DNA of 64,000 bases from Trichosphaerium sp. ATCC 40318 (lineage: Eukaryota > Protista > Tubulinea). The notes below the pieces were generated by a model. That model ran no database searches. It had not been told where the DNA came from and saw nothing but the letters and a program-made list of their open reading frames with translations. The stretch is from the NCBI GenBank assembly GCA_038496445.1, contig JALMLS010000461.1, positions 62,001 through 126,000 on the forward strand, read 5' to 3'. The translations under genes and the position numbers were made by a program. Shown one piece after another: positions 7,058-37,850 of the stretch. Numbering within the stretch: position 1 is the stretch's first letter; each line of letters starts with the position of its first letter.

Positions 7058-7893
7058 ATGGAAGATGTAGATGAAAAGCAAGAGCTTAGTGATATTATAA
7101 AAGACGTAGGAGTTGTTGAATCCATGTTAACATGGGGATTCTGGAGGTTTATGGTACCTAGCATGATTAACAAGTTCTTCTATAGAGCACTCTATCACGA
7201 GTACGCGTCAACAAACGTCATACAGTATAACTAAGTTTTTTGTAATAGTCGAGTGTATCGGGTTGGCTCTATGGCACCACAAGCTACTGTAACAACGGTA
7301 TCATCTAAAGGAAAGGACACGATTGATTTATTATCATTATCAAAAGGTACAAAGTTTAAATTGACTGTTGCTTACTCTTCTCTCCCGTCAGAAACTCCGC
7401 TAGTCATCAGTTTTGGAAGCTACACGTGACCACCGTGGTCAAACACAACTGGCAGATTGCAATCTCTCTCCGAAAAATGGAAGGGCAAAGCAGATGTCAT
7501 TGTGGTTTACATCCTAGGTACATTCAACGTCCACGTACATACTCTTAACGAAATGTTTAGAAGCACATGCTTCAGATGGATGGAAGTTATCGGGTAACGA
7601 AGTATGTTATCGTATGCCCAAGGATATTGAAGATCGCATTGGTATCATTGAAGACTTTAAAACAAACAACCCAAACTTTAAGGTTCCAATATTTGTTGAT
7701 CTTATGGATGATAATGCAAACAAAGCATACCAAGCTCTACCAGAGAGGTACAGTTTTTATCATATGACTGTGAAGTTGATCACATGTTAGGTTGTACATA
7801 CTTAAAGACAAGAAGATAATGTACAAAGGGGGTGAAGGTCCTTTTGGCTACAAGCTATCAGAGGTTGATGCTTGGCTAGAGCAAAATCTTTGA
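7058..7893 (+). CDS. DIO: Iodothyronine deiodinase-family selenoprotein (5 exons; in-frame TGA at 7427-7429 read as Sec)
   Basis: Spliced translation gives TPLVISFGSYT-U-PPW, VYILEAHASDGW and VDLMDDNANKAYQALPERLYILKDKKIMYKGGEGPFGY. All are hallmark deiodinase motifs, and the TGA is at the catalytic Sec position. Confidence 0.9.
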
Positions 7894-7934
7894 TACTTCT
7901 ACTACACCAAGAAACAATTCAACTGACAGAGAGT

Positions 7935-7985
7935 ATTTCTAGTGATTGTATTGCTTTAAACGTTATTACATTGACAATTGTGACA
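7935..7985 (+). promoter_or_regulatory. Candidate SECIS element in deiodinase 3' UTR
   Basis: GTGAT core (7942-7946), 11 nt, AAA (7958-7960), imperfect stem TGTATTGC/GTTATTACA, then TGAC (7972-7975). Spacing fits a eukaryotic SECIS but helix I is weak. Confidence 0.35.
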
Positions 7986-8162
7986 CATGACAAAATAAAT
8001 ATTCTTTACAGTTTTAACTCGCCTAAAAACACTAAATGCAAACATAACTGTCTGCTTTTCGCGAACATAATAACATTATGACTAATTTTGTTTTCATTTA
8101 TTCTGTTTGTTTGTTTATACAAAGCAATAAAAAGTGTACTATGATAAGTCTAGACGGCAATG

Positions 8163-9110
8163 TTATACAATGAAATCTACCCTTACTACATGTGCACCGG
8201 TTGCCTGGACACCCTCTTTTGAAGTTGAGGAGCAACCATACAGGGTTATAGTGTGTACACCTGCCAATGCTTTCAATCCTTCATCTGTCACGTTTGTCTC
8301 TTGTAGATCAATCTCATGTACACCAGCCAATGCTTTAATGCCTTCATCTGTCACTTTTGTGTATGATACATCTATAGTATGTACACCTGCCAATGCTTTA
8401 ATGCCTTCATCTGTCACTTTTGTATATGATACATCTATAGTATGTACACCTGCCAATGCTTTAATGCCTTCATCTGTCACTTTTGTGTATGATACATCTA
8501 TAGTATGTACACCTGCCAATGCTTTAATGCCTTCATCTGTCACTTTTGTATATGATACATCTATAGTATGTACACCTGCCAATGCTTTAATGCCTTCATC
8601 TGTCACGTTTGTATATGATACATCTATAGTATGTACACCTGCCAATGCTTTAATGCCTTCATCTGTCACTTTTGTGTATGATACATCTATAGTATGTACA
8701 CCTGCCAATGCTTTCAATCCTTCATCTGTTACGTTTGTATCTTCTAGATTAATCTCATGTACGCCAGACAATGCTTTAATGCCTTCATCTGTTATTGATT
8801 CACAAAAAAACAAATTGATTGTATGTACTCCCGCTAGTAACCTCAACTGATTGTCGTTTACATCTCTATACCCATTGAACAGAATGGCTGTATTCTGCAA
8901 TAAAGGACTGCCAGAAAGCATCATCACCTCGGTACTGCTTTTAACAATAATTTGACCATATCCGACGTGGTTATGGACAATATCCCGCAAGAAGTGGCAA
9001 GTTTGTGCGGAACGAAGTGTAAAAGTGCCTTGTTTGAGAATATGAACTATTAGTTCAACGGGGAGCGCGACAAGGTCACTAATGTTCTGGATAACCTCTT
9101 CTTCATTCAT
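8163..9110 (-). CDS. Intronless F-box-like + leucine-rich repeat protein, copy 1 (315 aa)
   Basis: N-terminal LVALPVELIVHIL (F-box-like). Nine 21-22 aa LRRs xIxLxxTxVTDEGIKALAGVH, six of them near-identical TIDVSY units, then a capping repeat. Confidence 0.9.
   Translation of the reverse strand: MNEEEVIQNISDLVALPVELIVHILKQGTFTLRSAQTCHFLRDIVHNHVGYGQIIVKSSTEVMMLSGSPLLQNTAILFNGYRDVNDNQLRLLAGVHTINLFFCESITDEGIKALSGVHEINLEDTNVTDEGLKALAGVHTIDVSYTKVTDEGIKALAGVHTIDVSYTNVTDEGIKALAGVHTIDVSYTKVTDEGIKALAGVHTIDVSYTKVTDEGIKALAGVHTIDVSYTKVTDEGIKALAGVHTIDVSYTKVTDEGIKALAGVHEIDLQETNVTDEGLKALAGVHTITLYGCSSTSKEGVQATGAHVVRVDFIV
8240..8830. repeat. 63-bp coding tandem repeat (LRR units)
   Basis: Units such as tgtacacctgccaatgctttaatgccttcatctgtcacttttgtrtatgatacatctatagta recur with 63-nt period. 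Confidence 0.95.
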
Positions 9111-9674
9111 TTTGCTAATATACGCTCGAAACGTGGCTATGTTTGTTATTATGTTATTGTTAGATGATCGGAATATTTATTTACAGTACGTTGACTAAAT
9201 TCGTTTTTTCCTCAACTAGTAACAACCGACAATAACGCTAACCACCGAAATCAACATACAAAATGAAGTCTAGTATACAGGTAGGCTACTGTTTTGAAAG
9301 CAGTAGTACTGTTGTCTGTCTCATTTCAAGTTTAGAGGCTTTTAGCAAAAAAAATCCATGTTTTACCTATCTGTCGCTTCTGACAGAACTTGCAAATCTC
9401 ATATATTTAAATGTGACCTGCCACTGCGCTTGTCAAGTCTAAAATTTCTTTTTTGTGAATCTAGCCTTTTCAAACCACGTGATTTAACCAGCCCATATGT
9501 AGATCATGCACATGGGTAAACATAATCAACTAATATGATATCTATACAACTCAATTTTAACAAGTAATCTGACTTCACAAGACGAAATATTTTGTGTTAA
9601 GGAAGGGTACTTTCGGACTTTTAGTTTTATTTATTGTATTTACATTAGTTTGTATTTGTTTTTTGTTTGTGTTT

Positions 9675-12600
9675 TTACACATGATCGCTTCCCTTCATGG
9701 TTACTTTTTTAGAACGACGTATATAATAAAACCATATACAAGCACCGACAATCACAATGAGAAATGTATAAAATAGCAAAGCGTAAGCATTTCCTAGTTC
9801 AACTGCAACAAAAGCTGTTTGTCCATCAATAAATGCATTAGCATCTGCCTCTACAGTTCAAATGTTAGAGACAACGTTGAACATTAGATTAAAACATGAC
9901 GTACGTGTTCTAGCTACAAATGCATCCACTGTTGAATTACTTACAGTTGGGACTTCAGGAAGACTGAAACTTGATGGTACAATATTATCAGTAAGAAGTG
10001 ATAAAGCCGGTCCAACAGAGCTATAAAAATTAAGCATGGATTTTTATCAATATAGTGACAAAGTGTTTTAACATACCGTAAAATATTAACGATATCATCG
10101 ATTCTTAGAAGACAAGATAGCAAGCTTTCAAATATATCAGCTAAGAAACTTGTGATAAATCTACCAAGCTCATCTGCGAGGTCACTACAACAAGTTAGTA
10201 AAGGTTTGAGATTGTTTTTAATGCTTACTCTTGTATTTCTTCTATTCGATCTGCAACGCTATTCAGCGCCCTATCTACAGACTCCATTCCGCTGTTTGTG
10301 TTCTTTTTAGTTTCAATCAAAGACTGGATATCACGTGAGCACTAAGAGTTGAAGTAGTAAAACGTACATCAGTCAGATTTTGAGCATAGATATCATTTGC
10401 ACTGACAATCAATTGGTTCACTTCAACTCTTACATCTTCAGCAAACGCCCTTACATCTGTATCAATCCATTTATCTATTTCAGATGATGCCGCGTTGATA
10501 CCAGCGAGATATGCATGGAAGAATATAATTGTAAGAATAGAGATAGCAACAAGTGCAATAGCAGGCTTCCAGATGAGAAATTCGATACAATACAAAGTTG
10601 GCACTTCTTCTGGTTTTTTACTACAAACAGAGATCAGTTTTATGTTATTCCAAAATGTTTGTTGTATTCTTACCGTGGACGTCTATTGATTTCTTTGATT
10701 TTTTTTCTGTTGTTTAACCACCGAGTTACTTCATTTGAATAATACAAGAATGCCCAAGTTCCAAAGATTGCAATGATGTTGAGAATGATTAAACCGTAGC
10801 CAATGAAACGAACAATATTGACAGCATCGTCATAAGGTTCAAAGTCCAAATCATCACAAAATTGTATCTCATTGTATTCTGGTACTGCGAAAGGAACAAG
10901 TGTAGCATTTATAACGTCTTGCCTTTAAGAAAAAAGTAAGAAAGAGACTGGAGTAAATACCAGTTGACTAAATACTCACTTGATAGCTTCGACTTCGTCT
11001 GTTAAGAGATCATCAAGAAGTCCTTTGACAAAGTCTGCTAAAGCTTCTTCAATCTCATCTGAAGATGGTAGATTCAAACCCTTTAAACACGTCAATCAGA
11101 CAAAACAAAACAGACAAGGACGTACAGATTTAGGCGCTACTGGAGTAAACTCAATTTCGCTTTCATTAAATCCAATATTGGTCAATCCAGTGTTGTTCAC
11201 TGTAGAGTTATTGTAAACTTCTATTTCGTTGGAGGTCGTATCAAGTTCATCTGTAACATCTTGTAGAATCGCTTCAAGTTCTGCATCACTTAGCTGTTCC
11301 ACAGATCTTTTAAAACCAAAGGCGCCCTTGATTTTATCTCCTGTATCTTTCAATGTATCCAACGCTGAATCCAACAGCTCAGTTCTATTTAACGGTTAAC
11401 TAAAGCTTGATATCGCACGTTATCACTTACATTGGATTGAACAGAAGTACCATAGCGTCATAACCACATAGGAATATTCTCATTTTCCCTGAAATAAGAA
11501 ATATTGCGACCTGAAGGCATAATGTCAGAATTGTGGCAACTTAACCGATGAAAAGTGAAGAAGTTAAAGCGTACGTCAACTGCAACGAAAACACCATCTA
11601 GAGCTAAGTCTAAACCACTAGTAGTTCCTGTTTTTATAGTATCTGATATGAAAGCATTCGAAGTTTCTGCCAATATCACGTGAGTGTTTACAACATTTGT
11701 TGATGTGATTTCAAGATCCAAACAATTATTCAGTATTTGTGTCTTTGTTGACTCAGCGCTCTGACTTAGGTTGTTCAAAAACAAGATATTGGAACCCCTT
11801 TAAGTAGAAAGTTATAAATCTGAGAATGAACGAAGAGTTACGTACAAGAGTATCAATAATGTACCAATGTACATGTGCCAGAACATCCTACAGCCGTTCG
11901 CTTTTGTACCAACGTACTTAGGATGTTTCTGAGATCCAAACTTTCTCTTGTTTTTTCGTCTACCACCTTTGGTGTAACTATTCTGTTGAATATGTTGTGC
12001 GCTGTCATTTTCTTGTTCGTCTTCATATGAGTCATCACTATATTCAACACGTTGAGGTACAGGCTGTGAGAATTGGACTTGATTGTTAGTATCACCATAA
12101 ACTATTGCTGGAGGTTGAGGTGGTGAAGTCATTGGTGGTGGAGGTGCTACCAATCCTGGTGGCGGTGGCTAAGCGGTACAGTTAGATCAATATACAACCA
12201 AATTGATTGAAACTATTCGGTCAGTACTTACTGTTCTCCTTTGATTAGGTATTTGAGGGTAAATACTGTTCTCATTCGATGGTGTGTTGTGGGTGCCTGT
12301 AGTGTTGGATGGCGTGTTTCTGTTATTGTTTGTAGCTTCTTGATTTTTGGTAGGTGCTTTCTTTCCTGACGCCGCAAGGCGCTTAGACGACGATGAGACT
12401 TTGCTCTTCTTTGTAGACTGCTTTCTATCAATAAGTGGGCCATCACCTGTTTCTTTCCGGCTGCTTTTTGGAGATACTTCCGGCAATGCTGCCCTTGCTT
12501 TACGAGCAAACGAACTACAGAAGAAAAGTTTGTGGTCCGTTTTTAAAAGGGTCACGTGCTCACTTACCTTGATCTCAATGAGGACTTCTTCTTGCTCTTA

Positions 12601-12976
12601 GGAGATTGCTGGACCTGTTCACTTTCCGGATGTTTTTGGGTGCTACATACAAATCTTTAGAAGAGATCTTCTTTTCCCAAGCGTACGTTTTTTTACTCTT
12701 CTTTGGCTTTGGACTCTTGGGAGAGTCTTTACGGAGTAACCCACTCAAACCTGTCGTGAAGTTAAATTTACGAACACTTAAGTCGTTACATACGTATATG
12801 ATCCTGTGGATTTTCTGTGTGTGACACCGTTTCTTTGTTCTACAACACATGTCAGACATAAAAGCGAGCAAGTTTTTTTTCGGGAGTTTTTTGGGAGTGT
12901 TCTTTCGTACAATCAAGTCTGCGTTTGGTTCAGTGTTCCAATTACCGCTAGCGGTAATGCCATGATTATCTGTCAT
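9675..12976 (-). CDS. Prm1-like multi-pass membrane protein (putative cell-fusion protein), copy 1, multi-exon
   Basis: Disordered N-terminus, then PKYVGTKANGCRMFWHMYIGTLLILL-GSNILFLNNLSQSAESTKTQILNNCLDLE...VAIFLISGKMRIFLCGY, VPFAVPEYNEIQFCDD, further TM helices, IFESLLSCLL and a final TM. Order of TMs, helical ectodomains and cysteines recalls fungal Prm1 (recalled family pattern, not searched). Confidence 0.6.
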
Positions 12977-13439
12977 TGTTGCTGTATTCGTAACAAGTAC
13001 TTATACACTATGGATTATGAGTCAATGTTGTTCTTGGTGTTTTTTTGAATGTTTGCCTTCTCCTCAATCAAGTGATCACGAACTTTCACTTTCAAAAACC
13101 TACACAGAACCTAAAGAACCTCTCAAGGGCTCAATTACGCTTTAACTACGCCATATAAGCCATCACGTGACTTTTGTGATGGTGTACGTGATAAATTACA
13201 CGATAAAACACGATTTCTCCAAACCAGTTTAATATTCATTTAAAGAGTACAGGGGAATATCAATTTACCGGGGAATCATTTTGTTTTCTTTTCATGAGGA
13301 TGATGTGATCTTTTTTTTCCTTTTTTCTGGTGAACTTCACGTGAATGGTTTCTGCGTCAACTTAACTACATAATCTCTTACACACAAAGACAAACACATC
13401 AACAGAACAAAAACAAACTCCTCCAAACGATAAAGAACA

Positions 13440-14301
13440 ATGACTCAAGTACGTGATAGATATCAACACGTGCTTGGTAAAACAGTTTTACTTTGTTGCT
13501 CTTTTTTTCGCTCTTTGTTCGTGTTGTTTACCAATGATACAATAGATTGGCAAAGATCTTTTCTACAATCAAAACAATATCCATGAAGTTGTACCAACAA
13601 TTGAAAGATTAACAAAAGCTATCAAAGGAAAGACAGAATATCAAGCCATTGGTTATTGGCCATTTCATCAGTTCAGATACAAAATAGGCATGTCTCTTGT
13701 TCAAGCGGCTTACAAAACAAGTTACATGAATCTCCTTATTGAGAATAAAAAAAATGGACGTCCAGAAACAGTCTACTTAATCATCTACAGTGGTCAAAGA
13801 GGTGAGTGTAAAAATCATTCTTTTTTGTTCGTTTAAAGTTCTGAGACAGTTGCTTATTTGGTGTAGGACCAATTGGTTTTCCAAGTCACTGTATCACTCT
13901 CATTCTCAACGGAGATCAAAAATATGTCATGGGTCAAAAGAAGGCAACAGGTCCAACCCAAAGAGATATGGTAAGCGCTTTTAATTGTTTTTAAACAACA
14001 CTCTTAGTATGCCATCTAACATTGTGTTGTAAAGGTCCGTTTGGTACCTCGTGATAAAGGAATAAGTAAAGTCATATTATGTTTCTCTGTTGGACGCAAG
14101 AATATTGTACCTTTTGCCAAGATGTTAAGGAAGTACACTAAACTCGCTGGAAAGAACAAAACAAGCCTCACTGGTGCCTCTCTTCAAAAATTCGATGATC
14201 CACAACTACAAGCAGGATATCAACAAGTTGTTGAGAACGCTGAAGCTCCTAAGGGCAAAAAGAAAGATGACTCTGATTCTGATTCTGAATCTGATTCTTA
14301 A
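13440..14301 (+). CDS. Hypothetical basic protein with acidic DS tail (gene B), copy 1, 4 exons
   Basis: ATG at 13440, GT..AG introns, spliced frame MTQ-IGKDLFYNQ...KKKDDSDSDSESDS. Conserved with mostly synonymous changes in the 33606-34457 copy. Confidence 0.75.
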
Positions 14302-14579
14302 ACACATTGTAAAACAATAACAAATAAACTCATATTTAAAAAATCTACAGTTGATACTTGCGTCATTATGTTGAAAGTTGGCGAGCAATGATCCGAGACT
14401 CATCAGGCCCCTTGATAGTCCGATACATTACGCTATAAATTATGTAAAAAATCTTGTTATCCCTCTGTACAAGCAGAGTTCTTTCAAGCTTAAGCTGCTT
14501 CCACAACTATGCTAAAATGGACGAAAAATAATTTAACATAACAACCGTTAAACCAAAGTATTTACAAGGCTCAGCAAGT

Positions 14580-15880
14580 TTATTTTTTGTTGTTCTTAGT
14601 TTTCTCTCTCTTCTGTTTTATCAAACACCTTAGAATATCCGTATTCTGTCCCAAACACTGGTGTATGAAAGGATCCTATTAGTGTCATTTCTGATCCAAT
14701 AATAATAAAAAAAAAAGTAGGATTGACATACATTTAAAGCATCTGAAACTGAGTATCGGTTCTCACGATCTTTGATGAGTACCTTACTCATAAATTCTGT
14801 AAATCTAGTACTCCATTTTTCTTCTTCGTTCAAAGTTGGTGGTGGATCATTCAGGATACACTCGAAAAACTACATGCAGTTAAAAAAAGAACATTACAAA
14901 AAAAAACATGTGAGCGAAGAAATACCAGCACTATTGAACATCTACATATATCGGCCCTAGGTGGATAAATCTCAGCGAGCTCTATTGCAGTGATACCAAG
15001 TGACCACATATCAGTCTTAAACTAATGACGTGTTATAATATACTCCTTTACATATGTGAAAGTACAGTAGTCTTTTCTGCTACTAACTCTTCAGGTGCTA
15101 TCCACAAAGGTACTGGATATAATTTCTATGATGAACATTACAATCTGTATCAACAAAAACAAAACTGTGTGCACCTTCATTAGATCATGACCAGGTTCCA
15201 ACAAGCCACCTAGGAATAAGTATTACCATAAGATAACTAAACTGTTGTCACAGCAGAAAAGTGTTTTGTACCTATTTTAACTTGAAATGAACAAGTTAAG
15301 AATATCTTTCCTTAAAACACAAACAACAGAGTAAGTTCAGTTAAACGGTGACAATGAGTGTGTAATATTAAAAGAGCACAAAAATACAACATACGAGCAC
15401 CAATTTGCCTGTATCTTATGCCATGTTTGTGGAGTATCTTCAAAGCAGAGAGAGTACAAAACAATACAAGAGCAATCTGTGATTCACTCAGAGGGAACTG
15501 ATTCCTTTTCATTATGTCCTCAAATGAACCAAATTTATGGTACTTGGAGACTACCTTTTTAAACAACGAAAGTGAGAAAGGACAAACAAAAAAATAAGCA
15601 ATGTACGTAAGTCAGTTTTGATTTAGCCTCAGTACGTATTATCTTCGCAAAGTACGAATGACTGCTTTTGAGGCTTAGAAATTCGAGTTTATCATGATAG
15701 AAGTCTATTTCCTCTTGACAATGTAGATCAACTGTTCTAATAACGACAATTTTTCCTGTTTTCGTCTGTTTGCATTTGAAAAGCTGGGTATTCCTTTAAA
15801 CAAACGCATTTTGAGTAAAAATAGATCAAACAAAGCACATACACTGCCAATTTACTTAAAACTTCGAATCCGTTAAGCAT
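14580..15880 (-). CDS. STE20-like protein kinase-fold protein, probable pseudokinase, copy 1
   Basis: Contains LSESQIALVLFCTLSALKILHK, PLWIAPEE, KTDMWSLGITAIELAE and PPPTLNEEEKWS. Catalytic motifs are replaced (VVIR, YRQ, IGG). Confidence 0.75.
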
Positions 15881-16023
15881 ACGTTGTAACTAAACTACAG
15901 AGACTGTTTTATGACGAAAGCACTACAATTGTTGACCAGCACACTAAAAACTCGAGATTTTTACGAACAGTATAATTTCTGAGATGTGAAATTGCTTTAT
16001 TGAATAAAACGTTGCTTGCTGAT

Positions 16024-16875
16024 TCACGTAGTGGTTGTACTCTTTTTGAAGCATTCTTTTCTAACAGCGTTTAGAGCTGTAATCCACTTTGCAGCATCAA
16101 ACAGTGCCAATATAATCATAGCAATCAATGCGACTCCATCAGTTGCAAAGATGGCAACCAGTTTAGCAGTGAGAATCAATCCCCATTTCAACCATTTGAG
16201 TCTGAAACAAGAAGAATTAGCAACAACAATAATAAAAAAACTGCTTCGATCGTGTGTACTTACTTTGTTTTCGTTGAGTGCTTCTTGAATTGGTTCTTGA
16301 GAGCTTTCAGTATTTTTTTCGTTGATATTGCCTTTATGAATCCAATGATTGCTTTAGCTTTTCCTTTTTCACTTGTCGCCTAAACAGATGACTGTTAGTG
16401 TGTGCTACCAAATGTATATTTACGTACTTTCTTGATAGCTAAGAAAGCTTTCTTGAACTTTTCTTTAGGATCTTCCTCTCCATTCATGAGTTCCTCAGCA
16501 GCTCCGCCAGCAATCTCGTCAGGAATCCCAATCATTTTCAGGACCATACCTAAGTGACAATACAGAGTCAGTGATAAACGCTTTAGAGAAGGCAAAGGGA
16601 GAAGGGTACTTACGAAAAGTAGCAATACCAAATTTGATCAAAGCTTTTTGGCATTTATTTCCACGTTGTGCCCGGCCGAAATCTTTGTCAGTAACTGGTT
16701 TCACTTTCGTGATTTCAGTCCCTTTTTCCTTTAGAGTCTTTTTTTGCTCCTCAATCGCTTGTGCAAGTTCTGTCCTGTCAGCTTTAGGAACAGTTTCCTT
16801 AAACAACTTGATGGCTTTTTCCAAATTGTCCTTTAGGGCTTCTTTGTACAGTTTAGTGTATTCTTTTTGAGACAT
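16024..16875 (-). CDS. Lys-rich helical protein with C-terminal hydrophobic hairpin (gene C), copy 1, 4 exons
   Basis: Spliced frame MSQKEYTKLY...LKWLKWGLILTAKLVAIFATDGVALIAMIILALFDAAKWITALNAVRKECFKKSTTTT*. Confidence 0.7.
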
Positions 16876-16939
16876 TTTCTATCCGCTGCAAGTTAGTTTT
16901 TGAATGTAAAGTGTATTCTCTATTCGCACTTGTTAAGAG

Positions 16940-16967
16940 GTTGTTGTTGTTGTTGTTGTTGTTGTTG
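16940..16967. repeat. (GTT)n microsatellite upstream of gene C
   Basis: About nine GTT units; a degenerate (CAA)n counterpart lies at ~34913-34936. Confidence 0.9.
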
Positions 16968-17979
16968 CGTTTTGTTTATGTTTTGTTAAGCAAGGTGTCA
17001 ATATTTTCAAACTGTAGAAATTCACCTGAAGTTTGTGATAGTATCGTGAACTCCCATTTCCTCCGGCAATTGGTAACGTGTAAACTTCTTGATTGCTAGA
17101 CATAGCTAAACGTATATTTCGAGAAAGTAACGCTACAATGCTCCCATTTTTCTCCACTTTTTCAAAAAATTCACGTGAAATAAACACGATCATAGACATT
17201 TGTTTACTATACTGTTGACTTCTGTACACGAAACATGTACAACCATGTTGTGTACATAATCTCAGAAAGTTCGGTAATTCATATGAATATCACGTGATAC
17301 AAAATAAATTTATTATCCAAAAAAAAGATCACAAAATTTGGGGTGTAGTTTCTAACCTTACAAACACTCGCAAATCATATTATTATGGCACATCATCAAT
17401 TTTTTTGAATCACTGATATGAAATATTGGGAATGTCATGTAACACGTTTTTTCACGAGCACGAACTTTCGCGCCACGTTTTTCAAAACTTTGCCTTGTTG
17501 TAATACGGTGTATCACAAGTTTTAGTTGTCTACAAGCCAGTGTAGTCACTTAGTAGCTCAAATACAGGAGTAAGGTTGAACTGTTTCATGCTGTGTCTGT
17601 TTGCGGAAGGAAGATAAAGAATAAGTAATGTTATGCTAGAGCCGGCCGAACATAACATTATCTTGAAATACTATGCTCCTACAAGCCACAGCAGTCACTA
17701 TTGTGCGTACCCTCGAGTCAAACATTAAATAAATACTACCAAGGTATTCACTTTAAAATATGGTTGGTTTATAAAACATACAGCTGCAACAGCATATTTA
17801 TTTTAATGTTTGACTTGAAGGGTACGCACAATAGCAAGAAATCTAAACATGAGGCGAATTAGTTGTATCAAGAGGCATTTTGGATAAAATAATCTCGCAA
17901 TACTACCGCTCCAGTACGTCCACAGTGATCAGTGAGATAAAAAAGCAAGTGGTTCTGTCAAGTTTTATTTATTATGTTA

Positions 17980-22642: not shown

Positions 22643-25600
22643 ATGCTGCGATTATACGCGAAAAATAAGGTTTTTTCAACACAACGCGTAACACGCCAGC
22701 ATACGCGTTGGTTGCACGCAGATATTGGGTCTTTGACAGTATCGAGAGCATCATGGACAATTGATAAACAAGACACTGCCGTTGAGTTCAAGTTCGATTC
22801 ACAGCTTCAACTTGGTGTTTTACGAAGGCCTGCGGGTAATAGAGGATGGTGGATAATGAGTAAGGGAGAAGAATTGGTTGTTAACAAATTCGACATTACG
22901 TTTGAATGGCCGTTTCAAAAAACCGTTGACGAGCTCTACGAGCTCTCTGATGAATGTAGAGAGCTTAAGGAAAATAAAATAGAGGTAATTAAAAATACTT
23001 GGATCACGTGGCTGATCATCTAGTTCAACAGAATTTAAACTGTAATTCGTGTTTTTTTTTCCCTTATTTTTCCTCTTTAGGCTGTTCCTGTGGAGAAGAT
23101 TGCTCATCACTTTTACGCACTAAAGCCTAAAGATGAAAAGAATGCTAAAGTATCTCCTTACGCACTTGCAAAGCACATCTGGGGCAAAGGTACGTGTTGT
23201 AAACTAAAACAATTTATATTTTGAGCACTCTCTTCTTTCTCTCACTTCTGTACGATTTCTTCACTTGGTTCATACTCATGTAGTACATTATAATTTATTA
23301 AGGACTCTTTAGAGCCAACAATCAATGAAGTTTACGCTGCACACATGTATTTAACGGAGAATACAATATTTTTTTCAAAGCGTGTTAGACATATTGCTTT
23401 GTTTACTGTTAGATCTCCAGAAGAGGTATTACGTCTGAAAAGAGGTCGTGCAAGGGCTAGAATGGTTATAAATGCTCGATCTGACTTTACTGGGAAATTA
23501 CATGAAATCCTTAACGGAAACAAACAAGTTGAATTTACGCAGCTTGATATGACCTTCCTTGAAGAAATAAAGTTGCATGCTATTGGCTCAAATATTGTAC
23601 GTACTAATGACTATTTTTAAGTCTCAGAATAACATCTAAAACACATAAAAAGAGTTGTACAACAACTCTAATTTTGAATGAATCGTTTTTGGCTAAGTTT
23701 TTTATTTATAGGCAAATGAAGGTCTCGTGTATCAGTCGTTCTTACAAGTACGTACATATTTATTCTTGTTTTTTATTTTGCTTTGCGTGGTTTTTCTAAC
23801 CACGTGAATTAAAGCCATTGGGGTTTGGTCGTACATCAAGAGAAGCATATGAGCTCTTGATGCAACTTGGCGTTTGGGATGACGAGGAAAATCCAGGTCT
23901 AGCAAAGTACGTCTTTTGTGCCTCTTACTACCAACATCAATCCACTTCTTGCCATTATGTTATTGCTACTACGTTATTGCTATATAGTGGTCACTGTTCT
24001 TATTTTAATTAGATGGGAAGGCTGGCCTCTAGAGTTTTCTCAGTACCACAGAGAGATCACTAAAAATTTTATGGATAATGTCCCTCCTGATGACCTTGCG
24101 TATGTTGGACGACTTAAATATATTGCATCATTGTGATTCTTCCTATATTAGCTAACACGTGTTTTTTATAGCCACGCACGTTCAGACATTAGTGAACCAG
24201 TATTCGGTATTGTTTCTGACTCTGGGTTCATTGAAACAGCTTTCTCTATTGATCTTACAACGAGTTATGAAGCTAGAGAGATATCTATACATGTACCAGA
24301 TGTACCGCGTTTTATTCAAGCTGATAGTGAGTTATGTAAACTTGCTGCTGAAAGAACAAATGATATAATTATTGCAGATAGAACATATCATATGTTTCCT
24401 GATCCTTTGGCTCATAATCTACTTACAATACAAAACGATTGTCCTTCTATTACATTCCGTATTATTGTTGATAATCTAGGGAATATAAAAGAGTTTAGAG
24501 TAGTCCCTACTACTATAAAACAAGTTATTAAACTTGAGTATAAGGATGTTGATGCATTGCTTTTCAGAAATGAAACTGGTATTGATGGAGATAAGACTAG
24601 TGTTCCTGTCATTGAACAGTTGTTTCAAGATCAACTTGAACAAATTGCAGAACTTGTTGGATTGAGGAGGAATGTACGGGTATCAAAAGGAGCTTTAGTA
24701 TTAGATATGCCACAACCTTACGCAAACATTAGAGACGGTACACCAAGTCTTGCTTCCGGATTTTTGTTTTTTTTTTGTTTTGTTCTGTACTCACTTAAGC
24801 TTTTAGGTACTCTCGATTTTGGTGTTAGATTTGAAGATTCTAATGCACGTGGTGTCATGGGAGAGCTTGAACTTCTTGTTGCTGAAGTAGCTGGGTATGA
24901 CGAGCCACTTTTTTAGAAATTTTTAAACATAATTTTGGTGTTGATGTTTTATGTAGGCATTATCTGTCAAAGAGTCGAGTTCATGGTATTTTTAAAGGGC
25001 AAGAAAAACCTGAGTATATGAGTGATAAACTTTCAGCGCAGGTTAAAAGACAGATTGTTAGAGGTAAAGAAAAACCTAGAGACCATTTTTACGTAAAAAC
25101 CTAGCTCTAACTTTTTCCATAGAAATTAGACAGAAATCAGGTCGACCTAACCCAACTCATAATGAGCTTATGATACTTGGATACAAGCGCCAACAAAAGG
25201 CTAACCCTATAACATACTCTATTGAAGCACAACAATATTATGGCCTTGGATTGGAAGTATACAGTAGCAGTTCAAGACCTATTTCAAGATTTTCTGATTT
25301 ATTGGCGTTACAACAAATACATTCGATCATGGCTAACCGTGAAGCTGCATACGATGCTCAAACAGTCATTAAAATCATCGATAAGTTCCATATGAGCATC
25401 ACAAAGTGTGAAAGGCTTATGAAAGACTCAACAAGATTCTGGACATTATTCTCTTTGAAAAGAAGTATGGATGAAAAACCAGGTCATGCTTTAGTTACAT
25501 CTGCTCTTATGCTTGATGTTAATGCTCCTGAGCCTCTTGTATTCTTACAAGACTATGGGTTATATGAGAATATGGAGGTACCTTCTATAGCGTCAGAAAC

Positions 25601-25817
25601 GTTAAAGAACGGAGATGTTATTACTGTCAGTATTGAACGTATTGATCCTTTCTTTGATGTTGTTATTGTTAAAGAACTTGATAAGAAGAAAGCAAAACAG
25701 AGCCATCCTAATATGATAAAGATGAAACCTAGGACCCCTACTGCTAAGAAGAACTTACCTAAGAGGGATCCTGATAATAGACACAAGAAGAGAGGTCGTA
25801 GAAAAGCGAGACAGTGA
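22643..25817 (+). CDS. RNase II/RNB-family protein (Dss1/CYT-4-like), likely mitochondrial, catalytic motif degenerate
   Basis: Basic presequence-like N-terminus MLRLYAKNKVFSTQR. RNB-type motifs IHVPDV, YHMFP, YYGLGLEVYSSSSRPISRFSDL and an S1-like C-terminus. Confidence 0.75.
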
Positions 25818-29053: not shown

Positions 29054-29546
29054 AGAAAACACTTCATGAGTAAACTAAAGTAAAATTATAAGTTTGAAAC
29101 ATATTCGTTTACATCTAGCAGTATGTTTACTACCAATACCATTTTGTGTAAGCAGGTAGAGTGGTATTGTAAGTCAACGATACAAATCTGAAAAAAAGTT
29201 TCCTAGCCCGATGAAAGACAACGAAATACAACACCGGTTTGCTGAATTTGTACACAGAAAATAAAGTTTACTTCGGTAATTAAATCTACAAAACAGTAGC
29301 TCAAGTGTTAAAAGTCTGCATCTAAACTTGAAATGAGACAGACAACAGTACTACTGCTTTCAAAACAGTAGCCTACCTGTATGCTAGACTTCATTTTGTA
29401 TGTTGATTTCGGTGGTTAGCGTTATTGTCGGTCGTTACTAGTTGAGGAAAAAACGAATTTAGTCAACGTCCTGTAAATAAATACTCCGATCATCTAACAA
29501 TAACATAATAACAAACATAGCCACGTTTCGAGCGTATATTAGCAAA

Positions 29547-30632
29547 ATGAATGAAGAAGAGGTTATCCAGAACATTAGTGACCTTGTCGCGCTCCCCGTT
29601 GAACTAATAGTTCATATTCTCAAACAAGGCACTTTTACACTTCGTTCCGCACAAACTTGCCACTTCTTGCGGGATATTGTCCATAACCACGTCGGATATG
29701 GTCAAATTATTGTTAAAAGCAGTACCGAGGTGATGATGCTTTCTGGCAGTCCTTTATTGCAGAATACAGCCATTCTGTTCAATGGGTATAGAGATGTAAA
29801 CGACAATCAGTTGAGGTTACTAGCGGGAGTACATACAATCAATTTGTCCAGTTGTGAATCAATAACAGACGAAGGCATCAAGGCATTGGCTGGAGTCTAT
29901 GACATTGGATTATCACAGACAAACGTAACAGACAAAGGCATCAAAGCATTGGCAGGTGTACACAAAATAAATTTAGATTTTTGTGAATCAATAACAGACG
30001 AAGGCATCAAAGCATTGGCAGGTGTATACAATATAGATTTAGATTTTTGTGAATCAATTACAGATGAAGGCATTAAAGCATTGGCTGGTGTACATGAGAT
30101 TGGATTATCAAGGACAAAAGTAACAGACGAAGGTTTGAAGGCGTTAGTAGGTGTACACTCTATCTTTTTATATGATTGTCTATCGATAACAGACGAAGGC
30201 ATCATCAAGGCGTTGGTTGGTGTACACAATATTGATCTATCGGGAACAAAGGTAACAGATGAAGGCATTAAAGCATTGGCTGGTGTACATGAGATTAATC
30301 TAGAAGATACAAACGTAACAGATGAAGGCATTAAAGCATTGGCTGGTGTACACACTATAACTGTATCATACACAAAGGTAACAGATGAAGGCATTAAAGC
30401 ATTGGCTGGTGTACATGAGATTAATCTAGAAGATACAAACGTAACAGATGAAGGCATTAAAGCATTGGCTGGTGTACACACTATAGATGTATCAGGAACA
30501 AAAGTAACAGATGAAGGATTGAAAGCATTGGCAGGTGTACACACTATAACCCTGTATGGTTGCTCCTCAACTTCAAAAGAGGGTGTCCAGGCGACCGGTG
30601 CACAGGTAGTAAGGGGCCCAGACTTATCATAG
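29547..30632 (+). CDS. Intronless F-box-like + leucine-rich repeat protein, copy 2 (361 aa)
   Basis: First ~100 aa identical to copy 1. Eleven heterogeneous LRR units plus the same capping repeat. Confidence 0.9.
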   Translation: MNEEEVIQNISDLVALPVELIVHILKQGTFTLRSAQTCHFLRDIVHNHVGYGQIIVKSSTEVMMLSGSPLLQNTAILFNGYRDVNDNQLRLLAGVHTINLSSCESITDEGIKALAGVYDIGLSQTNVTDKGIKALAGVHKINLDFCESITDEGIKALAGVYNIDLDFCESITDEGIKALAGVHEIGLSRTKVTDEGLKALVGVHSIFLYDCLSITDEGIIKALVGVHNIDLSGTKVTDEGIKALAGVHEINLEDTNVTDEGIKALAGVHTITVSYTKVTDEGIKALAGVHEINLEDTNVTDEGIKALAGVHTIDVSGTKVTDEGLKALAGVHTITLYGCSSTSKEGVQATGAQVVRGPDLS

Positions 30633-30930
30633 TACACTTTTTATTGCTTTGTATAAACAAACAAACGGAATAAATAAAAACAAAATTAGTCATAATGTTG
30701 TGTTTCTTGCACATGCTCCTTAAAAAACAAGCCACCAAAATTAATAATAATCATAAATTATGTTCGCGAAAAGCAGACAGTTATGTTTGCATTTAGTGTT
30801 TTTAGGCGAGTTAAAACTGTCAAAAATATTTATTTTGTCATGTGTCACAATTGTCAATGTAATAACGTTTAAAGCAATCACTAGAAAATACTCTCTGTCA
30901 GTTGAATTGTTTCTTGGTGTAGTAGAAGTA

Positions 30931-32095
30931 TCAAAGATTTTGCTCTAGCCAAGCATCAACCTCTGATAGCTTGTAGCCAAAAGGACCTTCACCCCTTTGT
31001 ACATTATCTTCTTGTCTTTAAGTATGTACAACCTAACATGTGATCAACTTCACAGTCATATGATAAAAACTGTACCTCTCTGGTAGAGCTTGGTATGCTT
31101 TGTTTGCATTATCATCCATAAGATCAACAAATATTGGAACCTTAAAGTTTGGGTTGTTCGTTTTAAAGTCTTCAATGATATTGTCCGTATCATTCAAGTT
31201 TGCTAATCTTTGCAACTTTTTGCTGTTTGTGACTTTTGGTTTTTGTGTTTAGTCAGATCTGACAGATCTTGCAACTTCTGCTAGTTCTTGCAAGTGTTAG
31301 TTCTTGCAAGATCTGTTAAAAACTACAAGATCTGACGTATCTTGTCAGTTCTGGAACAAACTAAATCCACTTGTACAGGTACAACGCATACAAATTTATT
31401 GCGACACCACGTGCTCTTAACCACCATTATTTTATTAGTTTAGCAGTTCTGTTGACGTCCTCTAAGGTCCAGCAGTTGTCTCCTATACTCTAAAACGAAT
31501 TATTACGCTATGTTATTACTGTACACTCAGCGCAAGATACTTTGGAAGCGCTTGGAATTTTCTTTGAGGTTTTAGCATTATCTCACGTTTAACTCCTCCT
31601 GACGCCTGAATATGTGCCAGTATTCGCTCCTGGTGCTAGTAAGTTAACATGTAAATTATTGTTAATTTGTAGCCGTTTTTATGGCTCCTTGGGGTAAGTA
31701 GTAATGAGAGCGCACCTAAGTAAAATACTGCGATCGTCTTGTTACATGATATGACTTTGACACAGTGCTTTTCATCTTGCCTTAATGTACATAAGGACGG
31801 CCAGCACGGTACATTGTCACGAGTTATAGAATGTGATGCAATCACATTGCACCGGTTCCGCAAGTTGTAATCAAAGCTGTCAGTTCTTGCAAGAACTATC
31901 AAAACTGACAAAATCTGACAGAACTTCCAAGAACTAGCAGAACTTACAAGATCACACCGCTTGATACTTCTGCCAAACCTGTCGCAAACTTAAATGATAC
32001 GGACAATACCAATACGATCTTCAATATCCTTGGGCATACGATAACATACTTTGTTACCTGATAACTTCCATCCATCTGAAGCACGTGCTTCTAAA
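30931..32095 (-). pseudogene. Deiodinase pseudogene (exons 4-5 only, interrupted by TIR element)
   Basis: Reverse complement of 7556-7893. Homology ends at the intron-3 acceptor, so exons 1-3 with the Sec codon are absent. Exon 4 is split by an 826-bp insertion. Confidence 0.9.
31181..32006. mobile_element. Non-autonomous TIR DNA transposon (MITE-like; TA target duplication, Tc1/mariner-type)
   Basis: 23-bp TIRs TTGTCCGTATCATTCAAGTTTGC / GCAAACTTAAATGATACGGACAA (1 mismatch). TA duplicated at 31179-31180 and 32007-32008 relative to the empty site in the intact gene. Subterminal CTTGCAAG/TCTGACAGA repeats; no transposase ORF. Confidence 0.92.
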
Positions 32096-32477
32096 TGCGA
32101 TAGTTGTCTAAAAAACGAACGAAACGAGTCTCAATTTCTTGTAATTTTCTCAAAACGTTTTGCAAAAAGACTACTTTTTTGACCGATATCTATAAAGGTA
32201 TGATCGAAAAACCACTACGAAAGTAATTATCATTCGAAAAAAAAAACCCCTAAAAATGGAACCTTCTGTAGTTTTGAAGTTAAATTTTTTATTTTCCTTC
32301 TAATACTTCACATACAACCTACACAAGCATTATTAGAAATCCCACAACTTTTTTTTTTTGTAACGAACAAAGGTATAAATTTACAACAAAAACATTCTTC
32401 TCTCGAGATGCACAACCATAAGTTGTTTGTGTCCTGTCTTACCGTATGTCAATGTACCAACTAACAATCTATATTTC

Positions 32478-32550
32478 GCGGGTTCGAATCCCGCCTCCCC
32501 TGCAAAAGGGGAGTGTGCCGAGTGGTTAAGGCGTTAAAATGCTAATTTAA
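32478..32550 (+). tRNA. Circularly permuted tRNA-Ser(GCT)-like element (3' half precedes 5' half)
   Basis: T-arm GCGGG-TTCGAAT-CCCGC (32478-32494); acceptor 3' strand CTCCCCT + G (32495-32502); CAAA linker; acceptor 5' strand AGGGGAG (32507-32513); D-arm GCC-GAGTGGTTAA-GGC; anticodon arm TTAAA-ATGCTAA-TTTAA (GCT at 32541-32543). Confidence 0.6.
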
Positions 32551-32752
32551 TAATTCTTCGTGGTGCCGGTACGTTGGCTACAACTCAAGGCCGCCTGAAA
32601 TGTCAGGCGGTAAGGGCTCACGACGCTATCATCTCTTATTTTTTTCATAAAATCGGAAGCAGTGTTACAAAGTTACAGCTTGACTTTTGCTGAATAAAGT
32701 CACCGCTTTTTTTTTTACGGCTTTGTTCCGCCTTTAGTCATTCTCCCTACCA

Positions 32753-33403
32753 ATGGCAAAGCGAAAGATATCAGTAGCGCATAGGGAGCGTATAACACTA
32801 TTGTCTGGGTTACCACTTGAGCTATTAGAAAGTGTTTGGAGATCAGAACCTGAAATATACACTAAATGGCCTCAATTATGTTGCAGTTGCGCTAGAACTT
32901 CGAAATACGATGATAATTTAAAGAAACATGGCGTGTGGAACTATTTCTCTTCAGACATCACCAAAAGAGGTAATCACCAAATAGTACAAACAACGGCGTA
33001 CTGTAACGGCCTTCTGGAGGGTAAATGCGCGAAGTATCAACATAACGGCAATCCAGCAGAAATTGCTTGTTTCAAAAAAGGACGAAAACACGGTGAGTAC
33101 AAGATTTGGTGGGCTGATACTGATGTATTGAAAATGCACTGCTTTTATAAACATAGTAAATTACATGGTCGTTACAAGTACTTCAATGAAAGCGGAGATT
33201 TAATGTGTGACTTTAATTATGAAAATGGAGAAAAACATGGAAAGTGTACTAGTACTGTTTATAGACAGACTTTGGTAATCAACTATGAACATGGTAAGAA
33301 GCACGGCGAATGTGATACTAGGTATAATGGAAGGTGGCTTTATAATCACGGTGTTCCTATCCAACAAGTTGATGGTCATAATAAATACCGAGTGTTACAC
33401 TAG
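32753..33403 (+). CDS. Intronless F-box-like + MORN-variant repeat protein (giant-virus-like)
   Basis: N-terminal LLSGLPLELLESVW. Repeats GRKHGEYKIWW, SKLHGRYKYF, GEKHGKC and GKKHGEC. Confidence 0.8.
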   Translation: MAKRKISVAHRERITLLSGLPLELLESVWRSEPEIYTKWPQLCCSCARTSKYDDNLKKHGVWNYFSSDITKRGNHQIVQTTAYCNGLLEGKCAKYQHNGNPAEIACFKKGRKHGEYKIWWADTDVLKMHCFYKHSKLHGRYKYFNESGDLMCDFNYENGEKHGKCTSTVYRQTLVINYEHGKKHGECDTRYNGRWLYNHGVPIQQVDGHNKYRVLH

Positions 33404-33605
33404 CAGCTTTTTTTTGACATACTGTGTTTTACGTTCGGAATCTAATAAGAATACCTAAGGAAAAGGTACTATGCCAATTTTTAGTCGAACATTGAGAGCT
33501 ATCATAGGAATTGGCTACCTGTATTCAATGCTTTGCCGTAATAAAACTATTGAAATACACAGAGCTTGGTGTTTATTCTTAAAATACAAACTATTTACAA
33601 AGTTT

Positions 33606-34457
33606 TTAAGAGTCAGATTCAGAATCAGAATCAGAGTCGTCTTTCTTTTTGCCCTTAGGAGCTTCAGCGTTCTCAACAACTTGTTGATATCCTGCTTGTA
33701 ATTGTGGATCATCGAATTTTTGAAGAGAGGCACCAGTGAGGCTTGTTTTGTTCTTTCCAGCGAGTTTAGTGTACTTCCTTAACATCTTGGCAAAAGGTAC
33801 AATATTCTTGCGACCAACAGAGAAGCATAATATGACTTTACTTACTCCTTTATCGCGAGGTACCAAACGGACCTTTACAACACAATGTTAGATGGCATAC
33901 TAAGAGTGTTGTTTAAAAACAATTAAAAGCGCTTACCATATCTCTTTGGGTTGGACCTGTTGCCTTCTTTTGACCCATGACATATTTTTGATCCCCATTG
34001 AGAATGAGAGTGATACAGTGACTTGGAAAACCAATTGGTCCTACACCAAATAAGCAACTGTCTCAGAACTTTAAACGAACAAAAAGAATGATTTTTACAC
34101 TCACCTCTTTGACCACTGTAGATGATTAAGTAGACTGTTTCTGGACGTCCACCAGGTTTATTCTCAATAAGAAGATTCATGTAACTTGTTTTGTAAGCCG
34201 CTTGAACAAGAGACATGCCTATTTTGTATCTGAACTGATGAAATGGCCAATAACCGATTGCTTGATATTCTGTTTTTCCTTTGATAGCTTTCGTTAATCT
34301 TTCAATTGTTGGTACAACTTCATGGATATTGTTTTGATTGTAGAAAAGATCTTTGCCAATCTATTGTATCATTGGTAAACAAACACGAATAACAAGGAAA
34401 AAAAAATAAAACTGTTTTACCAAGCACATGTTGAAATCTATCACGTACTTGAGTCAT
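33606..34457 (-). CDS. Gene B, copy 2
   Basis: Inverted near-identical copy of 13440-14301 with an intact frame. Confidence 0.75.
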
Positions 34458-35000
34458 TGTTCTTTATTGTTTGGAGGAGTTTGTTTTTGTTCTGTTGATG
34501 TGTTTGTGTTTGTGTGTAAGAGATTATGTAGTTAAGTTGACGCAGGAAATATTCACGTGAAGTTCACCAGATTAAGGAAAAAAGATCACATCATCCTCAT
34601 GAAAAGAAAGCAAAATGATTCCCCGGTAAATTGATATTCCCCTGTACTCTTTAAATGAATATTAAACTGGTTTGGAGAAATCGTGTTTTATCGTGTAATT
34701 TATCACGCACATTATCACAAAAGTCACGTGATGGCTTATATGGCGAAATTAAAGAATAATTGAGTCCCTTGAGAGGTTCCTTAGGTTCTGTGTAGGTTTT
34801 GAAAGTGAAAGTTCGTGTGATCACTTTTTTGAGGAGAAGGCAAACATTCAAAAAAACACCGAGAATAACATTGACTCATTTACCTCGCGCTTAACAAACA
34901 TAAACAAAACAAAACAACAACAACAGCAACAACAACCTCTTAACAAGTGCGAATAGAGAATACACTTTACATTCAAAAACTAACTTGCAGCGGATAGAAA

Positions 35001-35859
35001 ATGTCTCAAAAAGAATACACTAAACTGTACAAAGAAGCCCTAAAGGACAATTTGGAAAAAGCCATCAAGTTGTTTAAGGAAACTGTTCCTAAAGCTGACA
35101 GGACAGAACTTGCACAAGCGATTGAGGAGCAAAAAAAGACATTAAAGGAAAAAGGGACTGAAATCACGAAAGTGAAACCAGTTACTGACAAAGATTTCGG
35201 CCGGGCACAACGTGGAAATAAATGCCAAAAAGCTTTGATCAAAATTTGGTATTGCTACTTTTCGTAAGTACCCTTCTCCCTTTGCTTTCTCTAAAAGCGT
35301 TTATCACTGACTCTGTATTGTCACTTAGGTATGGTTTTGAAAATGATTGGGATTCCTGATGAGATTGCTGGCGGAGCTGCTGAGGAACTAATGAATGGAG
35401 AAGAAGATCCTAAAGAAAAGTTCAAGAAAGCTTTCTTAGCTATCAAGAAAGTACGTAAACTATATACATGCACCTGTGGGTAGCACACACTAACAGTCAT
35501 CGTTTAGGCGACAAGTGAAAAAGGGAAAGCTAAAGCAATCATTGGATTCATAAAGGCAATATCAACGAAAAAAATACTGAAAGCTCTCAAGAACCAATTC
35601 AAGAAGCACTCAACGAAAACAAAGTAAGTACACACGATCGAAGCAGTTTTTTGAAATTGTTGCTAATCCTTTTTGTTTCAGACTCAAATGGTTGAAATGG
35701 GGATTGATTCTTACTGCTAAACTGGTTGCCATCTTTGCAACTGATGGAGTCGCATTGATTGCTATGATTATATTGGCACTGTTTGATGCTGCAAAGTGGG
35801 TAACAGCTCTAAACGCTGTTAGAAAAGAATGCTTCAAAAAGAGTACAACCACTACGTGA
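35001..35859 (+). pseudogene. Gene C, copy 2, with +1 frameshift in exon 1 (or homopolymer sequencing error)
   Basis: gatcAAAAtttgg at ~35241 versus gatcAAAtttgg in copy 1. ORF ends KIWYCYFS*. Confidence 0.6.
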
Positions 35860-36006
35860 ATCAGCAAGCAACGTTTTATTCAATAAAGCAATTTCCATTT
35901 ACGAACAGTATAATTTCTTTAACCATCAAGGTTTTCAATGTGTAGTACTGGTCAACAATTGTAGTACTTTCGTCAAAAAACAGTCTCTGTAGTTTAGTTA
36001 CAACGT

Positions 36007-37508
36007 ATGCTCAACGGATTCGAAGTTATAAGTAAATTGTCAGTGTATGTGCTTTGTTTGATCTATTTTTACTCAAAATGCGTTTGTTTAAAGGAATACC
36101 CAGCTTTTCAAATGCAAACAGACGAAAACAGGAAAAATTGTAGTGATTAGAACAGTTGATCTACATTGTCAAGAGGAAATAGACTTCTATCATGATAAAC
36201 TCAAATTTCTAAGCCTCAAAAGCAGTCATTCGTACTTTGCGAAGATAATACGCACTGAGGCTAAATCAAAACTGACTTACGTACAACGCTTTTCTCGATT
36301 CAAAAAAACCAAAGGACGATTAATGTCAGGTTTTGTTACTTAGTAATTGCCATTTTCCACGTGAGCTTCAGCTATTGTGTGGTATCGGGATAGCATATAA
36401 AGATCTCAAGTGTACGCAAAGTCCTTATGAGATTGATATTAAACAATGTGCAAAGCAACAGAGTGCCCACAATGGTAGTTACTAGTAGCAAAGCTTACAT
36501 AACTTTGGCTTCTTATTTTTTGTTTGTTCTTTCTCACTTTCGTTGTTTAAAAAGGTAGTCTCCAAGTATCATAAATTTGGTTCATTTGAGGACATAATCA
36601 AGAGGAATCAGTCTCCTCTGAGTGAATCACAGATTGCTCTTGTATTGTTTTGTACTCTCTCTGCTTTGAAGATACTCCACAAACATGACATAAGATACAG
36701 GCAAATTGGTGCTCGTATGTTGTACTTTTGTGCTCTTTTAATACTACACACTCATTGTCACCGTTTAACTGAACTTACTCTGTTGTTTGTGTTTTAAGGA
36801 AAGATATTCTTAACTTGTTCATTTCAAGTTAAAATAGGTACAAACACTTTTCTGCTGTGACAACAGTTTAGTTATCTTATGGTAATACTTATTCCTAGGT
36901 GGCTTGTTGAAACCTGGTCATGATCTAATGAAGGTGCACACAGTTTTATTTTTGTTGATACAGATTGTAACGTTCATCACAGAAATTATTTCCAGCAGCT
37001 TTGTGGATGGCACCTGAAGAGTTAGTAGCAGAAAGGACTACTGTACTTTTACATATGTAAAGGAGTATATTATAACACGCCATTAGTTTAAGACTGATAT
37101 GTGGTCACTTGGTATCACTGCAATAGAGCTCGCTGAGATTTATCCACCTGGGGCCGATATATTTACATGGCAGGTATTTCTTCGCTCATATGTTTTTTTG
37201 TAATGTTCTTTTTTTAACTGCATGTAGTTTTTCGAGTGTATCCTGAATGATCCACCACCAACTTTGAATGAAGAAGAAAAATGGAGTACTAGATTTACAG
37301 AATTTATGAGTAAGGTACTCATCAAAGATCGTGAGAACCGATACTCAGTTTCAGATGCTTTAAATGTATGTCAATCCTACTTTTTTTATTATTATTGGAT
37401 CAGAAATGACACTAATAGGATCCTTTCATACACCAGTGTTTGGGACAGAATACGGATATTCTAAGGTGTTTGATAAAACAGAAGAGAAAGAAAACCAAGA
37501 AAAAATAA
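36007..37508 (+). CDS. STE20-like pseudokinase, copy 2
   Basis: Inverted copy of 14580-15880 with an extra ~225 bp in intron 2. Confidence 0.7.
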
Positions 37509-37629
37509 ACTTGTTCAATGCTGTAGGCTTTGTAAATACTGTGGTTATGCAAAAGGTTTCTGCAGTGTCTTGCCTATGTTTAGCGTTGTTGTGTAAGCGC
37601 CAGTTAAGAAGCTCCTAATGACACAAAAT

Positions 37630-37850
37630 CCGGCAAAGATCTTTTCTACAATCAAAACAATATCCATGAAGTTGTACCAACAATTGAAAGATTAACGAAA
37701 GCTATCAAAGGAAGACAGAATATCAAGCCATCGGTTAAGAGCATGCCTCTTACACAACCGATTTTATCATTGGTAAAGAAGACGAACAATGAGCTAACTA
37801 TTTTCCCGGCACGTGCTGCTTAAATATCGAAACCTGAGTCATTGTTTTTG
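37630..37850. pseudogene. Third, fragmented copy of gene B (exon-2 piece on +, exon 1/start on -)
   Basis: 37630-37737 matches 13548-13655 in the same orientation with a 1-nt deletion. From 37836 the sequence matches the gene B start and promoter in inverted orientation. Confidence 0.8.

Follow-up and report, generated by a model that had tools for sequence, protein, structure and literature searches.

Two paralogous genes, very probably of the PRM1 family, in a genome most likely that of the amoeba Trichosphaerium

Prm1 is the best-conserved plasma-membrane fusion factor of the fungi, where it aids the merger of the membranes of mating cells. It is usually seen as a stand-in for HAP2 in a kingdom that has lost HAP2. 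A genome-wide study counts Prm1 among the fungal novelties (PMC10406608), and PRM1 went undetected in Amoebozoa in an earlier survey of fusion genes (PMC5892394). A PRM1 gene, TRSP15481, is nevertheless listed with the plasmogamy genes by Tekle et al. 2023, in Table 2 of their paper on the Trichosphaerium genome (PMC10521059); our literature searches on amoebozoan and other non-fungal taxa found no further report of Prm1 outside fungi. Here we describe a gene (copy 1) at positions 9675-12976 of a 64,000-nucleotide stretch of contig JALMLS010000461.1, hereafter the window, together with a paralogue (copy 2) in the same window. On balance we think it probable that these are two paralogous genes of the PRM1 family (PF27758), each encoding a protein of about 838 amino acids, and that they belong to a non-fungal host, most likely Trichosphaerium; less surely, their products may act as facilitators of fusion.

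Copy 1 lies on the minus strand, running from an ATG at 12976 to a TAA stop at 9677-9675. These are exactly the limits given in a preliminary description of this DNA, which had proposed a Prm1-like cell-fusion gene here. The model was assembled exon by exon from three-frame translation and splice signals, giving 16 exons separated by 15 short introns of 43-71 nucleotides. All 15 introns have GT-AG ends, and in many the donor reads GTACGT. The exons sum to a coding sequence of 2517 nucleotides, that is 838 codons plus the TAA, with consistent phases throughout. The exons of copy 1, all on the minus strand, are as follows.

12976-12911, 12839-12794, 12750-12687 and 12642-12568, minus strand: exons 1 to 4
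12514-12232, 12168-11846, 11797-11575 and 11510-11431, minus strand: exons 5 to 8
11384-11126, 11080-10980, 10922-10674 and 10620-10368, minus strand: exons 9 to 12
10323-10229, 10184-10077, 10020-9905 and 9850-9675, minus strand: exons 13 to 16

The gene has a relative that has been transcribed. A phmmer search of 1.84 billion representative proteins with the 84 amino acids of exon 12 found one convincing match, P0001, a protein of 801 amino acids (E 6e-21, 52% identity). The other two matches (P0002 and P0003) are repeat-rich and unrelated, and were set aside. P0001 is encoded by a JGI contig (L001; sample 3300016894, Ga0186627_100778) of 2477 nucleotides with a guanine plus cytosine (GC) content of 40%. 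The contig, whose one reading frame is uninterrupted and intronless, terminates in poly(A) and is therefore a transcript. If it comes from a cultured marine protist, it would represent a second non-fungal carrier of the PRM1 family.

When P0001 was compared with the window by tblastn, it covered the gene in order from residue 1 to about residue 790 (E 2e-99). Local alignments made exon by exon place exons 6-16 in order on P0001 residues 177-784, with 48.5% identity; within exons 1-5 clear conservation is limited to the first ~40 residues. The P0001 segments meet at every predicted splice junction of copy 1, and thus provide an independent confirmation of the splice model. For exon 13 a start at 10341 was considered and rejected. 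The start at 10323, after the acceptor ...atatccag, was taken because with it copy 1 no longer has six extra residues relative to P0001, and because it accounts for what looked like a stop in copy 2.

Further relatives are scarce. A word search with exon 12 gave no candidates, although a word filter applied to a single exon is a weak test at such a distance. Word searches with P0001 (residues 215-801, and residues 600-760 at E ≤ 10) recovered P0001 itself and nothing else, the word filter being weak here too. Two metagenome scans and one viral scan returned no relatives of the gene, and a sequence search of the PDB returned nothing relevant. The exon-by-exon match to P0001 and the intact second copy nonetheless confirm that copy 1 is a real gene, beyond what could arise by chance.

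The second copy lies some distance along the window.

38264-41606, plus strand: Prm1-like copy 2, an intact paralogue, divided into the same 16 exons and transcribed in the direction leading away from copy 1

In copy 2 every exon is open and the splice sites have been retained. A blastn alignment of the two copies spans 3862 columns at 87.4% identity: the exons are 92.3% identical with no gaps, the introns are 88.6% identical with 99 gap columns, and the upstream regions are 82.6% identical. Nei-Gojobori counts summed over the exons give a synonymous divergence (dS) of 0.18 and a ratio of nonsynonymous to synonymous divergence (dN/dS) of 0.28. With all exons open, this ratio shows that both copies have been kept by purifying selection since the duplication.

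The two genes lie in a larger duplicated neighbourhood. The regions 7643-16991 and 29318-41639 are rearranged, inverted duplicated blocks, and the order of the blocks differs between the two arms. The paired blocks are these.

7643-9339 with 31180-29318: duplicated block pair
9637-13416 with 41639-37842: duplicated block pair
13017-14313 with 34879-33594: duplicated block pair
14551-15598 with 37546-36512: duplicated block pair
15596-16991 with 36291-34889: duplicated block pair

The Prm1 block is 87% identical between the arms and its neighbours are 94-95% identical, a difference that suggests either that the blocks are of different ages or that the flanks were homogenized later. A segment of ~400 bp upstream of the Prm1-like gene occurs three times, at 13017-13416, 37842-38220 and 34481-34882. 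The existence of a second copy, and of a duplicated neighbourhood, is new.

To which family do these genes belong? Here the evidence is carried by P0001. It has a precomputed Pfam match to PF27758, the family named PRM1 in the output of the ESM Atlas, and this match is not marked as weak or faint, corresponding to E ≤ 1e-5. In a feature search of the Atlas with P0001, fungal PRM1 clusters occupy ranks 1-3 (scores 0.92, 0.90 and 0.90), each having 202-212 of 256 features in common with it, and eight of the ten best named matches fall within the PRM1 family or its clan. The next different family after PRM1 is represented by a Prominin cluster at rank 9, with a score of 0.82. The preliminary description had called the gene Prm1-like, and had named prominin, tweety and DC-STAMP as the families that profiles might favour instead. 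The PF27758 match and the leading Atlas clusters support its call; moreover, in a scan of P0001 with the local Pfam library at E ≤ 10 there was no match to Prominin (PF05478), Tweety (PF04906) or DC-STAMP (PF07782). Ten exons of copy 1 also gave no match in a Pfam scan, these rival families included. Since the local library lacks PF27758, the blank scans of the exons and of P0001 carry no weight on PRM1 itself. We regard it as very probable that copy 1 is a member of the PRM1 family.

The layout of the protein can be compared with that of the fungal proteins. The hydropathy profile of P0001 has peaks at residues 238-256, 507-525, 575-593 and 768-786, leaving loops of about 250, 45 and 170 residues, and the same four spans are present in exons 6/7, 11, 12 and 16 of the window. 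The features of the encoded protein, in the order of translation, are listed by their positions in the window.

12232-12976, minus strand: N-terminal region (exons 1-5), presumably cytosolic, with a high content of Lys, Ser and Pro, and probably disordered
11776-11889, minus strand: span 1, split by intron 6 and preceded by a basic stretch and P-K-Y-V-G; the P0001 counterpart is 238-256
11433-11613, minus strand: loop-1 hydrophobic stretch, covering the end of exon 7 and exon 8, with embedded charges and ending in a Cys (IFLCGY)
10739-10816, minus strand: span 2, in exon 11 (hydropathy 2.12), with VPEY...FC before it and a Lys/Arg-rich cytosolic turn after it
10503-10580, minus strand: span 3, in exon 12 (hydropathy 2.36), the exon being 52% identical to P0001
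10077-10184, minus strand: conserved hydrophobic stretch of loop 2, exon 14, with the LLSCLL Cys ~70 residues before span 4; P0001 C694
9720-9788, minus strand: span 4, in exon 16 (hydropathy 2.27), followed by a short basic C-terminal tail

The motifs quoted in the preliminary description are all present in this model: P-K-Y-V-G in exon 6 directly before span 1, NNCLDLE in exon 7, IFLCGY in exon 8, VPEYNEIQFC before span 2 in exon 11, LLSCLL in exon 14, and the C-terminal span in exon 16. The loop-1 hydrophobic stretch has its terminal Cys ~80 residues past span 1, with a Kyte-Doolittle hydropathy of 1.29 for exon 8, and in P0001 it corresponds to residues 311-338, including C338. N-glycosylation sequons are concentrated in the two long loops of P0001, and Lys and Arg abound ahead of span 1, in the turn joining spans 2 and 3 and in the C-terminal tail. 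This fits a protein with two extracellular loops and cytosolic ends, and we infer that the window's protein is probably disposed in the membrane in this way.

Fungal Prm1 has a comparable layout. In Cryptococcus the protein has four spans, at 67-87, 352-371, 433-455 and 647-688 (PMC5720818). Yeast Prm1 functions as a disulfide-linked dimer formed by Cys-120 and Cys-545; Cys-120 adjoins a conserved, mostly hydrophobic, charge-bearing stretch of loop 1 that does not span the membrane, and Cys-545 lies where loop 2 is most conserved (PMC2868043). Elements of both kinds occur in the amoeba protein, their distances from the spans being similar to those in yeast. Their cysteines, in IFLCGY and LLSCLL, are kept in copy 1, copy 2 and P0001 and may be the counterparts of yeast Cys-120 and Cys-545.

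A number of points weigh against the assignment. The correspondence of the cysteines would be one of position only. The Atlas recognition value for P0001 is low, at 1499 compared with 2300 for typical known families, and the Atlas comparison is therefore supportive rather than decisive. The PRM1 profile match was precomputed, and was made to the relative P0001 rather than to the window's own protein. With exon 12 as the query, phmmer returned no fungal protein at E ≤ 1e-3 from the 1.84 billion, which for a single exon is a weak test, so that the likeness to fungal Prm1 is visible at the level of profiles only. Lastly, a single-sequence AlphaFold model of P0001 residues 215-801 is all-helical with a predicted local distance difference test (pLDDT) score of 41, and is unusable.

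Some of these points would be explained if the gene encoded another kind of multi-pass protein with long helical loops, like prominin or tweety, whose PRM1 signals arise from a similar build. The low recognition value, the want of a pairwise match to fungal Prm1 and the Prominin cluster at rank 9 all lean in this direction, and the Prominin and Tweety proteins share with the predicted amoeba protein several spans and two long, helical, glycosylated extracellular loops. Yet the Pfam profile that matches P0001, at E ≤ 1e-5, is that of PRM1, and neither the Prominin nor the Tweety profile matches, nor that of DC-STAMP, in a scan at E ≤ 10 with a local library that holds all three. PRM1 also heads the Atlas list and accounts, with its clan, for most of the best named matches. 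Moreover the amoeba protein has four spans, which would leave its two ends on one side of the membrane, where prominin has five. We consider a protein of another family very improbable, and favour membership of PRM1.

The window has a GC content of 36.8%, and copy 1 is built of many exons with short introns. The published draft genome of the marine Trichosphaerium sp. has 37.69% GC, with introns of 75 bp on average and 8.7 of them per gene (PMC10521059), so in both composition and intron style the window fits that genome. The host is most likely this marine amoeba and not a fungus. The preliminary description had judged the host apparently non-fungal and the rest of the window amoebozoan in look, and this is supported by the agreement in GC and intron style and by the failure of exon 12 to match any fungal protein at E ≤ 1e-3 among 1.84 billion. 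We have nonetheless weighed whether the gene itself might be fungal, either because the contig is a contaminant or because the amoeba recently acquired it from a fungus. Elsewhere Prm1 is known from fungi, among whose novelties it has been counted (PMC10406608), and a GC content of ~37% with short introns would also suit some early-diverging fungi. A fungal gene, or one newly acquired from a fungus, should however have many fungal Prm1 matches, where exon 12 had none among 1.84 billion proteins and its sole relative comes from a JGI transcript. The gene carries 15 introns in the style of the host, it is present as two diverged paralogues among other duplicated host genes, and the GC and intron statistics agree with those of the Trichosphaerium genome paper (PMC10521059). 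A fungal origin of either kind is very improbable. An ancient transfer from a fungus is possible.

What might a PRM1-family protein do in an amoeba? The product is predicted to have a long disordered cytosolic N-terminus, four spans and two large, helical, probably glycosylated loops facing outwards, of ~250 and ~170 residues. Extrapolating from the fungal proteins, it might reside in the plasma membrane as a dimer, possibly disulfide-bonded through the conserved cysteines of loops 1 and 2. At a site of cell-cell contact it would help the apposed bilayers to reach a fusion pore rather than to stall or lyse. In such a scheme the protein would be a facilitator of fusion and not the fusogen itself. 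The topology, the dimerization, the timing of expression and a role in the fusion of gametes or of trophic cells we can only infer.

We propose a role of copies 1 and 2 in cell fusion, which the preliminary description took to be sexual or parasexual, only tentatively. Cell fusion has not been observed in cultures of Trichosphaerium (PMC10521059), and Prm1 has not been proven to be a fusogen even in yeast (PMC6504885). The gene could be a true member of PRM1 that does another job, in the integrity of the plasma membrane, in the organization of that membrane during phagocytosis, in the fragmentation of the multinucleate cell or in the making of the cell covering. The absence of fusion in culture would suit such a role, as would the HAP2 reported in the Trichosphaerium genome (PMC10521059): HAP2 is a proven gamete fusogen, and with HAP2 in the same genome Prm1 is not needed as one. 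In addition Prm1 has no assigned biochemical activity, and its loss in yeast also brings lysis and calcium-dependent phenotypes (PMC2868043, PMC5720818). On the other hand, loss of Prm1 leads to a defect in plasma-membrane fusion in every organism tested (S. cerevisiae, N. crassa and Cryptococcus), and TRSP15481 was detected only in medium-sized cells, in the three single-cell transcriptomes of that size class, where other sex-related genes were detected as well (PMC10521059). A task in maintaining the membrane, with no part in fusion, has to be taken seriously as an alternative, if on this evidence an unlikely one beside facilitation of fusion.

Several other genes lie within the window. Two genes, at 8163-9110 on the minus strand and 29547-30632 on the plus strand, are identical over ~100 residues at the N-terminus, beyond which both carry arrays of LRR_6-type repeats whose internal tandem units measure ~63 nucleotides; the long mirror open reading frames opposite them are probably not genes. 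On the plus strand, 24152-25817 holds two long exons of a gene for an exoribonuclease with an RNB domain (RNase II / Dis3-like). A single-exon open reading frame at 47561-48181, also on the plus strand, encodes 206 amino acids with Imm33 and DUF2314 domains of bacterial type (Pfam E 7e-9). No identical protein is on record, and the gene may have come to the amoeba genome from bacteria. Towards the end of the window, 59541-60713 and 62754-63950 are two diverged copies (71% nucleotide identity) of a gene for a repeat protein with 'GGA[IL]...' motifs, reminiscent of the repeats of polymorphic membrane proteins or of pectin-lyase-like beta-helices.

The preliminary description held that this gene would extend Prm1 beyond the fungi. 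As to the presence of a family member in an amoeba this is supported, through P0001; its novelty was partly anticipated, because PRM1 had already been listed for Trichosphaerium as TRSP15481 (PMC10521059). If the assignment is true, either the origin of the PRM1 family moves back or an old gene transfer is indicated, and the presence of both would argue against Prm1 and HAP2 being simple alternatives. One could go further, and suppose that Prm1 is no fungal invention at all, but an old part of the fusion machinery that amoebae, fungi and animals inherited from their shared ancestor, and that it was retained beside HAP2 by a few amoebae and widely lost elsewhere. In the present genome it would then exist as two diverged paralogues, which might form a mixed disulfide dimer or serve different partners or life stages. 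We offer this as a speculation that is rather unlikely to hold. More practically, copies 1 and 2 would provide a pair of markers with which to seek a fusion or sexual stage of Trichosphaerium, a matter of long dispute. The advance is a moderate one, the family being known, the mechanism of Prm1 unknown and the gene already listed in one paper.

The nearest published counterpart is TRSP15481, which probably comes from the same genome and is possibly copy 1 or its paralogue. In the genome paper it is a bare gene identifier, with no sequence, domain, topology or phylogenetic analysis, no mention of a second copy and no remark on its unusual presence outside fungi (PMC10521059); the accessible portion of the supplements does not mention it.

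Compared with fungal Prm1, the amoeba protein begins with some 215-235 residues that are probably disordered, and the spacing from the charged residues to the loop-1 cysteine looks longer than in yeast. Its likeness to the fungal proteins is found with profiles and not in the pairwise searches with exon 12 and P0001. It occurs as two paralogues, in an amoeba that is reported to keep HAP2. In common with fungal Prm1, P0001 fits the PRM1 profile and there are four spans separated by loops of comparable length. By their position, the charged hydrophobic stretch of loop 1 with the cysteine at its end, and the cysteine in the conserved stretch of loop 2, may correspond to those of the Prm1 of fungi.

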